Positions 46,875 through 51,411 of a DNA stretch of 64,000 nt are shown here, one piece after another. This DNA comes from Prasinococcaceae sp. CCMP 1430 (Eukaryota > Plantae > Prasinodermophyta). How positions within the stretch are numbered: position 1 is the stretch's first letter; each line of letters begins with the position of its first letter. A program made the translations under genes and the position numbers. Under the pieces are notes generated by a model. The model saw only the letters and a list, made by a program, of their open reading frames with translations. It made no database searches and had not been told where the DNA came from. The DNA lies in assembly GCA_013416795.1 (NCBI GenBank), contig RQSC01000056.1:64047-128046 (forward strand), given 5' to 3'.

Positions 46875-47657
46875 TAAGCGCACAACGCACGCAAAGGCGC
46901 ACAGTCAATAGTCGCACATGGATTGCAGACCCTCTTTCCTGGAACGAACCGTAAAGGGGGCGAAGGAGAGCAGCGCGCGCCTCGAGGCGCGCGCGCGGGC
47001 GCGGTCCCAGGGGGCGCCACTGGGTCCCACGGCCTTTTGTGAAGGGGCCCCGGGGACAGCCACGGGCGCCCCGAGTCCCTCCGGGGGGCACACCCGAGTC
47101 GTCGACCTCGGAGGCCTCGCGCGGCGCGCTCACGCACGCACTCACGGCTCTCATCATCACCTCATCAGTCAGGGGCATGCCGGCATTCTGAATTTCAGAA
47201 CCAATGAACCCTAACCTCTGAACCCCAAACAACTTCTGATCCCGCATTCAAAATGATACGTAGCTGGTTCGTCCATTTTCTACCCCAACCATGTCTGACC
47301 CTGCTACGGTACGCAGAGTATCATTTTGAATCCATACCGTACCCGTATAAACCCTACAGTAATCCGAGAGACATGGGTTGGGGTAATGGGTTGGCGAGGG
47401 CCGCGCCTCGTCCCCCACCCGCGTTCCGGACCGGGTCTTCCCCCTCGCTGAACCGGGTTCGATTTCGTGCGATCCCCGCAGAGACGCGGCGGTCGGCGCG
47501 GATGAGGATGGTCTGACCCGGTTCATCCGGGGTTCGACCCCGGGTTGTCTCGCGCGCTCGCGGCCTGGCGTTTGCGATCGCGCGCGCGCGTGGCGCGACG
47601 CCGCGCCGCGTATCGATATCGGCGCCGCTGCTGCTGCCGCACGCGCGCCCGGCCCCC

Positions 47658-47902
47658 NNNNNNNNNNNNNNNNNNNNNNNNNNNNNNNNNNNNNNNNNNN
47701 NNNNNNNNNNNNNNNNNNNNNNNNNNNNNNNNNNNNNNNNNNNNNNNNNNNNNNNNNNNNNNNNNNNNNNNNNNNNNNNNNNNNNNNNNNNNNNNNNNNN
47801 NNNNNNNNNNNNNNNNNNNNNNNNNNNNNNNNNNNNNNNNNNNNNNNNNNNNNNNNNNNNNNNNNNNNNNNNNNNNNNNNNNNNNNNNNNNNNNNNNNNN
47901 NN
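47658..47902. other. Assembly gap (N run), probably hiding the first exon of the ELIP-like gene
   Basis: Run of N followed by an intron-like 3' end (GCTGAC twice, then GCACAG at 47983). Confidence 0.9.
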
Positions 47903-47983
47903 CGTGCGGCCTGCGCGCGCGACCGTGCGCGCCGCGCTGACGCGCGCTGACACGCGACCACGCACCTGCGCGCGCACGCACAG

Positions 47984-49375
47984 CTGACGAACGCCGAGCT
48001 CGCCGAGGTGGTCAATGGCCGTCTGGGCATGGTAGGCTTCCTGTTCTGCCTCGTGGTGGAACTCGCCTCGCCCAACAACATCGGGGCGCAGCTGCAGGTG
48101 AACGCGCTGTACGTGCTGCTGGAGACCACGGCGCTCGCCACGGCCTCGTACGTGCTGCCCGAGGTCCTGCTCGGCGGCACGCTGCGCGAGAGCCTCACCG
48201 CGGCGGGCAAGAAGGCCGTCAACCCCGAGGAGGACGCGCGCGTGGCGCTGCGCTTCCCTGGCGAGTACCGCGCGCTCTTCGATGTTGAGCGCCTCAACGG
48301 ACGCGCGGCGATGGTGGGCTTTACGGCCGCGGTGCTCGCCGAGACGCTGCGCGGCGGCGACGTCGAGTACCTGCGCCTGCTGTCCGCCGGCGGCTACGAG
48401 GACCTGCTCGGGTTCAAGGACGCGCTGCTGGCGAACCACGCCAGCTTCGTGGAGGACGCCTACCTGTTCTTGCTCACCGGCACCACCTTCTTCGCCATGG
48501 GGCAGCTGGTGGGCGTGCAGCGCAAGAGCCGCTCGCTGGGCGCCAGCGTGCACACGTGGACGGGCGCGCTGCAGTTCGTGGCTTGCCTGTACCCCGTCTA
48601 CCTCGAGCGCGTGGAGCGCGCGGTGCCCGGGTGGGAGTGGCAGTGGGTGGCGCTCGCGCTGGCGATGGCCAACTGCCTGACGGTGGGGCCGCTCATGAAG
48701 TACTACAAGGGGCCCAAGGTGTACGGCGTGCTCTTCCAGCTCGGCTACGACTTCGTGATCTCCTTCCAGGGCATCCAGCTGATCGCGTGGTCCAACCTGC
48801 CGGACTCGCCGGATTGGATGTACTGGGCGGTGATGCCCTTCTGGTACTGGAGCGTGCAGAAGCTGCTCACGAGCGCGAAGTACATCGCGGCGCTCGCGCC
48901 GCCGGCGAAGGTGCCGGCGGCGCTGGGGGGGTTCGCGGAGCGCTCGCGCGCGCAGCTGGTGGGCATCAAACCCGACGCGCCCACGCTGGCGTACACGGGG
49001 CTCAACACCGCCGCCGCGCTCTTCGACAACGCGTGGATGGCGCTGTTCACGCTCAAGGGGGCGGAGGGCTTCTGGGCGTTCTCCAACGAGTTCGCGCCCA
49101 ACGACGCCGAGCTCTCCCTCATAAAACCCGCGGTCGGCAGCCTGACCGTCACCGTGGTGGTCTTCCTCGGCACGCTCGCCGCGCGCCGAAAGATCCCCGA
49201 AAACCTCGCGGGCGGCCTCAACGTCGTGCTCGGCTCGGTCGGGCCGTGGCTCATCCTGTTCTGGCACAAGCTGGTGGCGCCGGAGGAGGCGTGGTTCCCG
49301 CAGTTCCAGAACTACGGCTGGGACAGCTGCAGCGCCGTGCTCGCGCGCCTCTCGGACCACTGCACCACCTACTAG
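47984..49375 (+). CDS. ELIP/LHC-like protein (two chlorophyll-binding motifs) fused to an unknown multi-pass membrane domain; 5' exon missing
   Basis: ELAEVVNGRLGMVGF and DVERLNGRAAMVGF are LHC motifs (ExxNGRxAM), separated by a middle helix. The ORF continues without a stop for ~320 more hydrophobic, W/Y-rich residues. Confidence 0.8.
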   Translation: MTNAELAEVVNGRLGMVGFLFCLVVELASPNNIGAQLQVNALYVLLETTALATASYVLPEVLLGGTLRESLTAAGKKAVNPEEDARVALRFPGEYRALFDVERLNGRAAMVGFTAAVLAETLRGGDVEYLRLLSAGGYEDLLGFKDALLANHASFVEDAYLFLLTGTTFFAMGQLVGVQRKSRSLGASVHTWTGALQFVACLYPVYLERVERAVPGWEWQWVALALAMANCLTVGPLMKYYKGPKVYGVLFQLGYDFVISFQGIQLIAWSNLPDSPDWMYWAVMPFWYWSVQKLLTSAKYIAALAPPAKVPAALGGFAERSRAQLVGIKPDAPTLAYTGLNTAAALFDNAWMALFTLKGAEGFWAFSNEFAPNDAELSLIKPAVGSLTVTVVVFLGTLAARRKIPENLAGGLNVVLGSVGPWLILFWHKLVAPEEAWFPQFQNYGWDSCSAVLARLSDHCTTY

Positions 49376-49706
49376 AGGGGTCTCGGCACGGTGATAATAG
49401 ATGGCTCGCGGGAGAGGGCGGGGTCGGGTTGTGAATGGACGCTACGAGGGCGCCAGCGCCTGCACAGCAGCAGTGCGCCAGCCAGCCAGGGTTAATAATA
49501 GGCACGTGGAGGTATTAAAAAAAAAATAGAGATGCGACACGCGGCCGACGGAGCTTGCGCGACGGAGGCAGCGCGCGGAGCCAAGGGCGGCGCTAATGAG
49601 CGCCGGCAGCATCTCATCGCGCCGGCTGGGTTCCCGGATGCGCGAGCGCCGCCTCCTCCTCCACCGACAGGGGCGCCTGTGCGCGCGCGCGCGGCACGCG
49701 CCGAGG

Positions 49707-50948
49707 TCAGCGAGCGCGCGCTTCGTTCCGCAGTCGAGGTGAACCCTCGCGAGCAGCGTAGCCGGCGCTTCGCGAGCAGCGGCGCCGCACACGCGCGCCT
49801 GCGCGCGCTGTCGAACATACCGTGTGGTGCACGTCGCCGAAGTTGAGGTCGAAGCCTTCGAGTGCGAGGCCATCGTGCGCGAGCTGGACGTCGAGGCCTC
49901 CGTTGGCCTCGCCCCACTGGCGCAGCTCCTCGTTGACGGTGTCCTGGTCGAAATCGTGCGTCATCCCAACGCACAGCGCTCGGCGCGGCGACAGCATCCT
50001 CACGCACTCGAGCGTCTGCGGCAGATTGAAGTGCGTGTTGTGCGGCCTCTCGTAGAAGAGCGCGTCGACTATGAGCAGCTCGATGCCCTGGTCGCACAGC
50101 TCGTGGATGAGGGCCTCGGTCTGCGGCGGCAACTCGGAGATGTCGCTGAGGTACACCACGCGGCAGCCGGGGGCGCCGAAGAGGAAGCCCAGGCAGACGT
50201 AGTCCGCGCCGTGCCACACGGGCAGGGGGATCATCGTCAGTCCCGGCACGGGCTCGAACGGTCGCGCCCCGCCCCCGATGGGCGCGCCCATGGTTCGGAA
50301 CTCGAGCTGGGCCACCCGCCGCTTGACGTCAGACTTGGCGTTGGCCTCCTGCCCCTGGGGGCAAAGGTACGGGAACGCGCGCGACACGGTGCCCATCGTA
50401 TGTTCGCTCCCCCACACCGTCGTAGGGCTAACGAGCTCGGCCTGCTTGGCGTAGTCCTGCATCTTCACTGTCCTTTGCATCAGGCGGACGTCGTCCAGCC
50501 CCATCATGGCGTCTGCATGCTCATGGGTGAGCACGACTGCGTCGAGGCGGTCGACGCCGTGCTCGGGATACCACCTCAGCATTGACTCGCGGAAGGTTTT
50601 GCAGCAGTCGATTTGCACCACGCGGCGGCTCGGCTCGGCGATCGTGCCGACCCCCTCGCCGTTGGCGTTGCCGGCGTCCTCCCCCTCGTCCCCCTCCACG
50701 AGCAGCAGCAGGCTCGGGTTGCACCTGTAGTTCTTCGCGAACCGCGGGTCGACGCCGGCGCAACTCAGACACACAAGGCACCCGCCCATGTCGCCGTTTC
50801 CGTTGCCGCCGCCGCCTCGGCGCACGTACGGCGCAAGCCCCTGGCGCGCACCGTGGCGCGGCGGCGTGCGCGCGCCCACCAGGCACAGCGGATTGGGCAC
50901 ACCGCTGCTCGAGCCAGTGCCGAGAAAGACCAGTTTCGACGACGCCAT
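49707..50948 (-). CDS. Metallo-beta-lactamase fold hydrolase (PhnP/YycJ-like)
   Basis: KLVFLGTGSSSGVP, NPSLLL, QIDCCKTFRE, THEHADAMMGLDDVR, PLPVWHG, YLSDIS, HNTHFN and VGMTHD. The exact 3' end is uncertain. Confidence 0.92.
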   Translation of the reverse strand: MASSKLVFLGTGSSSGVPNPLCLVGARTPPRHGARQGLAPYVRRGGGGNGNGDMGGCLVCLSCAGVDPRFAKNYRCNPSLLLLVEGDEGEDAGNANGEGVGTIAEPSRRVVQIDCCKTFRESMLRWYPEHGVDRLDAVVLTHEHADAMMGLDDVRLMQRTVKMQDYAKQAELVSPTTVWGSEHTMGTVSRAFPYLCPQGQEANAKSDVKRRVAQLEFRTMGAPIGGGARPFEPVPGLTMIPLPVWHGADYVCLGFLFGAPGCRVVYLSDISELPPQTEALIHELCDQGIELLIVDALFYERPHNTHFNLPQTLECVRMLSPRRALCVGMTHDFDQDTVNEELRQWGEANGGLDVQLAHDGLALEGFDLNFGDVHHTVCSTARAGARVRRRCSRSAGYAAREGSPRLRNEARAR

Positions 50949-51130
50949 CGCGCCTCCGCGAGGGCAGGCTGGAGACCCGCGCGGCGCCCGCCCGCAGGCG
51001 CCACCCGACCGTCCTCCGACGCCGCTCCCTCTTCGCCCCCGCCAGTCAGCTGTCGACGGGGCGGGGGTTGGCGGGTGGGGGTGGGGTGGGGGAGCGGCGC
51101 CCCGCCGGCACCGGGCGCCGGCGCCGCGCG

Positions 51131-51411
51131 ANTCCGGCTCCGAGGACGACATCGAGGACGACGACTACGACTTCGACTTGGGCGGCTCGGCGCGTCAGCG
51201 CGCGAAGAAGGCCAGCCGGCTGTCGCGCGGCTTTGACGCGGCGCCCGACGCCATCGTGCTCGACGAGGGCGACGATGACGCGTACGCGTTCGCAGGCGCC
51301 GACGGCGGTGTCGCGGGCGCGCTCGGCTACGGCTTCGGCGCCTCGGCGTACGGCGCGCTCGGTGCGTACGGCGACGAGCCCGAGGCCCTCCGTGCCCTGC
51401 CAGAGGGCTGA
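51131..51411 (+). CDS. Small acidic hypothetical protein; start codon probably masked by the single N at 51132
   Basis: A[N]TCCGGCTCCGAGGAC reads (M)SGSEDDIEDDDYDFDLGGSARQRAKKASRL...ALPEG*, with coding-like codon usage. Confidence 0.45.

Follow-up and report, generated by a model that had tools for sequence, protein, structure and literature searches.

Light-harvesting complex (LHC) domains that are fused to enzymes represent a known kind of protein, and in every such fusion that we know of the partner is a pigment-biosynthesis enzyme. The nuclear gene PRCOL_00004845 of Prasinoderma coloniale joins an LHC domain to a partner of eight membrane helices that matches no described family. Its second and last coding exon occupies positions 47984-49375 of the forward strand in the 64,000-nt stretch of genomic DNA analysed here (the window, to which all positions refer; residue numbers follow P0028, the 500-aa public protein model). 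The partner, the N-terminal placement of the LHC domain in a position where it replaces a membrane helix, and its interchange with rubredoxin or cytochrome b5 in relatives are new. The LCYB/LCYE/LHC fusion of Ostreococcus (Blatt 2015, Plant J 82:582, as cited in PMC9686992) offers a first comparison. This protein of the Mamiellales is likewise encoded by a prasinophyte nuclear gene and combines a three-helix LHC domain with a membrane-associated enzyme of lipophilic pigments. However, its LHC domain is C-terminal and its partner is a flavoprotein cyclase, whereas the P. coloniale LHC domain is N-terminal, takes the place of a helix and precedes an integral eight-helix orphan domain.

Other LHC-bearing enzymes differ more in their partner. 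Chlorophyll c synthase of the dinoflagellate Breviolum carries a fused CAB domain that is dispensable for catalysis (PMC13297055). It resembles the present protein in that an LHC/CAB domain is joined, as an accessory, to an oxidizing pigment-biosynthesis enzyme, but that enzyme is a soluble 2-oxoglutarate/Fe(II) dioxygenase, a domain absent here (no Pfam match). The LHC clades listed for P. coloniale include ferrochelatase (PMC7455551). In ferrochelatase 2, an LHC motif is likewise attached to a pigment (tetrapyrrole) enzyme, where it presumably binds pigment and regulates or localizes the enzyme; there it is one C-terminal helix on a soluble enzyme, in contrast to a three-helix N-terminal domain on a polytopic one. 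The ELIP and HLIP (OHP) proteins of stress response and assembly resemble the LHC part in size, as a three-helix domain, and in the ExxNGRxAMxGF(x6)E motif that helices 1 and 3 carry, but they are small, free-standing proteins. Finally, cytochrome b5-fused front-end desaturases and rubredoxin-dependent AlkB-type hydroxylases likewise carry an N-terminal b5 or rubredoxin domain in some family members, although their His-box di-iron signature is absent here and no sequence or fold similarity to them was found. Our literature search returned no description of the fusion, no paper on the family and no rubredoxin-linked prasinoxanthin gene. The supplements of the P. coloniale genome paper do not mention the gene identifier, and all family proteins, although public, are annotated only as hypothetical.

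One transcript from two exons

The reading frame runs uninterrupted from 47984 to a stop codon at 49373-49375, and the product of the open reading frame (ORF) is identical to residues 46-500 of the EukProt entry EP00793 PRCOL_00004845-RA (P0028). The same 455-aa ORF was found, identical, on 16 contigs from Tara and other sources, and homologues that are 51-68% identical share its two-part architecture. A 3' splice site (..cacgcacag|CTG), with its AG at 47982-47983 in phase 0, ends immediately before 47984. Exon 2 (47984-49375) thus encodes residues 38-500 and the stop codon. Exon 1, which contributes 37 codons in P0028 (MGAAK...PPVE), is hidden in the window together with the GT donor and most of an intron of ~116 nt by an assembly gap of 264 N at 47639-47902. 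Both exon 1 and the intron are visible in two Tara scaffolds, L001 and L002, that carry the identical gene; in L002, the region reads ...CCAGTGGAG|gtgcgag...cacgcacag|CTGACG. All six scaffolds with the gene (L001-L006) end no more than ~240 nt upstream of the GTG at 48008, and the gap in the reference assembly coincides with this place. Some feature of this place resists assembly, perhaps very GC-rich or repeated DNA near exon 1 and the promoter.

Is the fusion expressed as such? Contigs from public RNA runs were aligned to 47903-49750 of the window. Contig X1 (994 nt, from a culture run of P. coloniale) and contig X2 (963 nt, from a marine metatranscriptome) both span 47982-48844. They take in all of the LHC part and half of the membrane domain, and neither shows a joint, an insertion or a deletion. 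Upstream of 47982, their loose ends are the end of exon 1, joined directly, so that the intron has been removed. A second RNA contig spans 48816 to 49512 or 49526. The contigs break at 48815-48845, a 30-base word that is common to a second P. coloniale gene. The 3' untranslated region (49376-49526) ends with the RNA contigs, which stop at 49512-49526 beside a genomic A-run. The gene is therefore nuclear, expressed and composed of two exons, and its LHC and membrane parts lie on one transcript. In the Pycnococcus provasolii genome, the fusion is a single uninterrupted ORF of 1716 nt. The metatranscriptome population differs from the reference at 48295 (C>G), 48322 (T>C), 48808 (G>C) and 49401 (A>G), positions at which the culture runs match the window exactly.

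These results bear on a first-pass annotation of the window, made from the letters of the sequence. Its central claim, an in-frame fusion of LHC helices to a polytopic membrane domain, is borne out by the transcript, the Pycnococcus ORF and the single clade that the fused proteins form (see below), and the check that it proposed, a single cDNA, is answered by X1 and X2 with their spliced exon-1 end. Its left boundary, 47984, is not the start of the protein but the start of exon 2 after the splice site.

An LHC domain joined to an eight-helix orphan domain

The N-terminal domain (residues ~38-165, 47984-48367, forward strand) is recognized by PF00504 (Chloroa_b-bind), which matches this part only (E 1.9e-8 to 4.7e-9, 35.4-37.4 bits against a cut-off of 22.3) and also exceeds its cut-off in the three other fused lineages (31-43.9 bits). 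Helix 1 carries the motif ExxNGRLGMVGF(x6)E at 48005-48061, with the core E-V-V-N-G-R-L-G-M-V-G-F at 48005-48040, and helix 3 carries ERLNGRAAMVGF(x6)E at 48287-48343, with the core E-R-L-N-G-R-A-A-M-V-G-F at 48287-48322. In all four fused lineages, E45, N48 and R50 of the first motif and E139, N142 and R144 of the second are invariant, as are the Gly, Met, Phe and trailing Glu of both motifs, while the LHC domain as a whole is 34-52% identical (alignment A3). In the LHC superfamily, these Glu, Asn (or His) and Arg positions of two homologous helices provide the chlorophyll ligands and the Glu-Arg pair between helices. This contrast suggests selection on the pigment-ligand residues. Judged by its trailing Glu, the motif is of the ELIP/HLIP type. 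Matches of the LHC part in the Protein Data Bank (PDB) are weak and generic, with many LHC chains (LHCI among them), PsbS and HliD, and a finer LHC subfamily is therefore not assignable. The protein also differs from the ELIP subfamily, whose members are free-standing three-helix proteins induced by high light, as its LHC domain is covalently joined to a 330-aa domain. AlphaFold2 places the three helices at residues 40-65, 78-99 and 130-158 with low confidence (pLDDT 35-75), and in a hydropathy scan helix 1 is the only one of them to exceed the threshold.

The remainder of the protein (residues 170-500, 48380-49372, forward strand; alignments A1, A2 and A4) is modelled by AlphaFold2 as an all-helical domain of ~330 aa with eight membrane-length helices (pLDDT 75.6 and pTM 0.72 for the domain alone; pLDDT 80-89 over the C-terminal part of the full-length model). 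It is strongly conserved. Alignment A1 has a mean column identity of 64% and ~50 invariant columns, and ~40 columns are invariant across prasinophyte, dinoflagellate, b5-fused and cyanobacterial members. The window protein matches its relatives with E values of 1e-57 to 1e-190 and retains every invariant column of A1, A2 and A4 (the E-D, H, R..R, SFQG, D-N, K and GPW positions). Invariant polar residues comprise E194, D195, H227, R246, R249, S297, Q299, K330, T371, N378, D385, N386, K418 and R438, and H189, D368, E398, H465 and E472 are nearly invariant. Helix counting, the orientation that is canonical for LHC proteins and the positive-inside rule together would place the N-terminus and the RKSR, KGPK and RRK loops on the stromal side and the H189/E194/D195/E398/H465/E472 cluster on the lumenal side. 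The cluster of conserved His, Glu and Asp residues could be a metal or proton-relay site.

Residues 170-500 match no Pfam family, even at E 10 over 21 aligned members, and no NCBIfam family. A profile search of PDB sequences gave chance clathrin matches at E 0.3 only. By structure, Foldseek searches of the PDB with two models returned no match at E <= 0.001, VIA-align over 48,161 chains gave noise-level resemblances only, and the ESM Atlas yielded TM values of at most 0.41 by shape and, by features, 0.78 to a viral cluster, with no usable match. The weak fold resemblances are to seven-transmembrane receptors, transporters and b-type cytochromes only. No internal repeat was found when the two halves were compared using hhalign (probability 0.5%).

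Specific enzyme classes were considered and rejected. Membrane fatty-acid desaturases and hydroxylases are marked by three His boxes (HxxxH, HxxHH and HxxHH; eight His), and the domain has none of these; H189, H227 and H465 are its only conserved His residues, and there is no Pfam match to the di-iron superfamily at E 10. AOX/PTOX/AcsF-type di-iron carboxylate proteins contain two E...ExxH motifs on a four-helix bundle, whereas no conserved ExxH and no fold match were found here. Identity of the partner with ferrochelatase, the 2-oxoglutarate-dioxygenase chlorophyll c synthase or lycopene cyclase was dismissed on the lack of any Pfam, NCBIfam or PDB-sequence match in residues 170-500.

Much of the first-pass description thus stands. 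Of its two ExxNGRxAM motifs, both are present and the second reads as described, but the first reads ExxNGRxGM. The aromatic-rich stretches that it quoted as membrane helices lie in the C-terminal part, where the model has its eight long helices. Its assignment of the membrane domain to no recognizable family agrees with the searches of sequence and fold libraries, and the Foldseek search that it proposed leaves the domain without a structural match. The fusion also proved absent from the literature that we found, with hypothetical protein as the database description, and the membrane domain does exist unfused elsewhere, in single-helix, rubredoxin-bearing and b5-bearing members.

A small family with exchangeable N-terminal modules

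An exhaustive hidden Markov model search of 1.84 billion cluster representatives returned 60 clusters at E <= 0.001, all of them family members or fragments; word-based searches returned 27 and 37 clusters. On its sequences, the eight-helix family is small, strongly conserved and uncharacterized. Labelled members come from the prasinophytes P. coloniale, P. provasolii (GHP04361.1) and Pseudoscourfieldia marina (XRB14402.1) and from the dinoflagellates Ceratium fusus (MMETSP1074) and Pyrodinium bahamense (A0A7S0FDX2), and a further member (P0005) belongs to an Acaryochloris-like cyanobacterium. The dinoflagellate proteins start with a signal peptide followed by an F-V/L-P-A/T-P motif, which we read as a putative plastid-targeting presequence. 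In addition, there is a large and abundant marine clade, whose clusters reach 265 member sequences and whose contigs are 1-2 Mb long. Its abundance, chromosome-sized contigs and sequence composition suggest that this clade represents Mamiellophyceae. Searches of viral contigs and of the genomes of 185,579 bacterial and archaeal species (GTDB) gave no member, and all 80 loci in JGI metagenomes are eukaryote-like, none being nearer to the cyanobacterial member.

In the maximum-likelihood tree, the four LHC-fused proteins form one clade (100/98) with two sub-clades, Prasinoderma with P0037 and Pycnococcus with P0004. This clade is sister (86/82) to the abundant unfused clade (100/100), which includes the rubredoxin forms. 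P. coloniale also expresses a second family member outside the window, which shares the 30-base word (48815-48845) with the fused gene. Its flanks translate as AWSAQPDAPS-WMYWAVMPFW-WWSVRKLGES and are near to the unfused type and to a 546-aa protein on L100. P. coloniale accordingly has both fused and unfused paralogues.

What stands before the eight-helix domain varies between lineages. All members without an LHC domain have a single hydrophobic helix there, and in the fused clade the third LHC helix stands in its place; whether one helix or three LHC helices, an odd number always precedes the domain. Two clusters (231 and 265 member sequences) within the abundant unfused clade, on contigs of up to 233 kb, additionally carry rubredoxin (PF00301, 23.6 bits against a cut-off of 23; CxxCGY...CPxC; E 2.8e-6 to solved rubredoxins). 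One divergent member, P0160, carries cytochrome b5 (PF00173, E 1.8e-18; HPGG; E 4e-14 to solved b5 structures). Both modules precede a strongly hydrophobic helix. A further arrangement occurs in the clade of P0229 and P0156 (L110, 125-2095), where a signal-anchor N-terminus and a conserved soluble segment of ~60 aa (…VSW..K.LL.RLRD…V…E.DVE.LR.RL…G…) come before the domain. The segment sits between two hydrophobic helices and has no Pfam match; we take it to resemble the FtsH extracellular domain.

The cyanobacterial member, P0005, consists of one helix and the domain (367 aa) and is encoded on an 11.9-kb metagenome contig, L018. Upstream and divergent lies a gene for a CRTISO/CrtH-family flavoprotein (TIGR02730 in two halves, E 1e-37 and 1e-40), and a gene for a D27-like carotene isomerase (PF13225, E 5e-40) follows P0005 after 77 nt on the same strand. 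We assign the contig to a cyanobacterium because an adjoining radical-SAM gene shares 79% identity with its Acaryochloris marina counterpart. A second contig from the same sample encodes proteins that are 80-90% identical in an identical gene order, with a CpeT gene in addition. The carotenoid cassette was not found beside the radical-SAM gene in 80 other cyanobacteria. The support that this neighbourhood lends, from one environmental lineage, is suggestive, not strong. The CRTISO/CrtH-family gene itself (L018, 1-2395, reverse strand) is broken up into two overlapping ORFs, for which a frameshift or a read error is the probable cause. The C-terminal half of the gene continues in frame into a GltD-like module (Fer4_20 plus an NAD(P)-binding pyridine-nucleotide oxidoreductase). 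If real, this arrangement would give a flavoprotein of the carotenoid-isomerase family an NADPH/iron-sulfur domain of its own for electron input.

Downstream of the fused gene in the window, a convergent gene (49707-51152, reverse strand) encodes a protein of the metallo-beta-lactamase fold (PF12706, Lactamase_B_2, as matched on the Tara copies). The window copy contains one ambiguous base, which gives an X in the translation, and a loose end of an RNA contig at 49677 suggests an intron or untranslated-region boundary.

Function of the fused protein and its implications

What might the eight-helix domain do? We tentatively favour, at somewhat short of an even chance, a redox or isomerase enzyme of a plastid membrane that acts in the metabolism of carotenoids or other lipophilic pigments; the LHC domain would bind pigment and serve as its tether or regulator. 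This reading is drawn from the LHC-enzyme fusions known so far, all of which involve pigment-biosynthesis enzymes, from the two electron carriers fused at the same position in other lineages and from the carotenoid genes that flank the cyanobacterial member. The eight-helix domain would be a thylakoid or envelope enzyme and would most likely catalyse a redox or isomerization step on a carotenoid or another substrate of a lipophilic-pigment pathway or, more broadly, on some other lipophilic substrate of the thylakoid. In the fused clade, the LHC domain that replaces the single N-terminal helix would probably bind chlorophyll and/or carotenoid. It may tether the enzyme at sites of pigment-protein assembly. 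Alternatively, it may pass pigments on or quench them, or make activity depend on the supply of pigment. The first-pass annotation had suggested that the protein could be an enzyme or transporter of the thylakoid with a part in the metabolism of pigments or lipids, and the rubredoxin and b5 partners and the carotenoid neighbourhood point the same way.

Several observations weigh against the pigment-enzyme reading. The domain has no catalytic motif of known oxidoreductases, neither His boxes nor ExxH pairs, and only three conserved His residues; with no fold match, the word enzyme rests wholly on domain partners and gene neighbourhood. Of those partners, b5 is known from one 1.7-kb contig of a single run, whose protein sits on a long branch, and rubredoxin occurs in one small subclade only; most members have no extra domain. 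Moreover, helix counting puts rubredoxin and b5 on the face opposite the main acidic/His cluster, which fits poorly with simple direct electron delivery. The cyanobacterial cluster derives from one metagenome (two related genomes) and is absent from the 185,579 reference species and from the equivalent site in the 80 cyanobacteria; the gene may have been acquired laterally, and its neighbourhood could be accidental. We also know of no obvious special carotenoid common to dinoflagellates and prasinophytes, and the AlphaFold2 model has low confidence in the LHC part (pLDDT 35-75).

Part of this evidence would suit a domain without catalysis, one that carries pigments or lipids, forms a channel or acts as a scaffold on which pigment-protein complexes are built or repaired. 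As a scaffold, its LHC and rubredoxin modules would act as OHP/HLIP and RBD1/RubA do in photosystem II assembly. RubA/RBD1 is a membrane-anchored rubredoxin of photosystem II assembly, and the combination of rubredoxin with one membrane helix mirrors it. The trailing-Glu motifs are those of assembly-associated LHC-like proteins, with HliD among the weak PDB matches, and the domain has many conserved aromatics, no recognizable catalytic motif and weak fold resemblances only to seven-transmembrane receptors, transporters and b-type cytochromes. However, ~15 polar or charged residues are very conserved, and several of them (D385, N386, S297 and Q299) lie within helices, which is more typical of an active or specific substrate site. 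A cytochrome b5 fusion is also hard to reconcile with a scaffold. Moreover, unlike assembly factors, which are usually universal, the family is lacking in most photosynthetic organisms. We therefore regard a non-catalytic role as unlikely, though it deserves to be taken seriously. A lipid enzyme is a less probable alternative. The gene for delta-3 desaturation of 18:4n-3 to 18:5n-3 (octadecapentaenoic acid) is still unidentified; the product is made in plastid galactolipids, occurs almost exclusively in marine microalgae and has been reported from dinoflagellates, haptophytes, raphidophytes and Ostreococcus (PMC13706080). The eight-helix domain could be this missing plastidial front-end acyl-lipid desaturase, anchored to the thylakoid by its LHC domain. 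The labelled family members are marine prasinophytes and dinoflagellates, the latter with plastid-type presequences, and one plastid member carries rubredoxin. An N-terminal cytochrome b5, as in P0160, is a hallmark of front-end desaturases. Yet the domain has none of the three His boxes of membrane desaturases and no match to the Pfam FA_desaturase family at E 10, the genes on either side of its cyanobacterial member are for carotenoids rather than lipids, and the known LHC-enzyme fusions all concern pigments. No haptophyte or raphidophyte is among the labelled members, which is weak evidence as most matches carry no label, and 18:5n-3 in Prasinoderma or Pycnococcus was not confirmed from the literature. 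Taken together, we consider the desaturase improbable. Least credible of all is an artefact, in which adjacent ELIP and membrane-protein genes were read as one ORF in GC-rich DNA or mis-assembled by the gap. Long spurious ORFs are common in this window of 68% GC (for example, one of 668 aa on the opposite strand), and the gap lies directly upstream. Nevertheless, single RNA contigs from a culture run and a metatranscriptome bridge both parts, and the junction recurs in independent Tara contigs, in the Pycnococcus genome and in two further lineages. We rejected the artefact on these bridging contigs, the single fused clade and the uninterrupted Pycnococcus ORF.

A bolder reading, which is possible but rather doubtful, is that the eight-helix domain founds a new class of plastid integral-membrane enzyme with its own metal or cofactor site and a swappable N-terminal module, and that it performs a missing step of marine algae. 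The LHC, rubredoxin or cytochrome b5 module, exchanged between lineages, would supply pigment or electrons. Candidates for the step are the keto- or unusual-ring carotenoid branch of prasinophytes and the delta-3 desaturation that makes 18:5n-3.

With this protein, the few LHC-enzyme fusions known would gain a fourth type, the first whose LHC domain forms part of a polytopic membrane protein. The fusion is common to Prasinodermophyta and Pseudoscourfieldiales, which are very distant green lineages. Several steps of algal pigment and lipid synthesis have no gene, and genes are still missing for the route to prasinoxanthin, siphonaxanthin and loroxanthin (PMC11857680). The eight-helix family is narrow, highly conserved, putatively plastid-directed and abundant in ocean picoplankton, and it combines three alternative N-terminal modules (pigment-binding, iron-sulfur and haem) with a cyanobacterial copy between carotenoid genes. 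Thus, we propose the family as a concrete and testable candidate for one of these steps.

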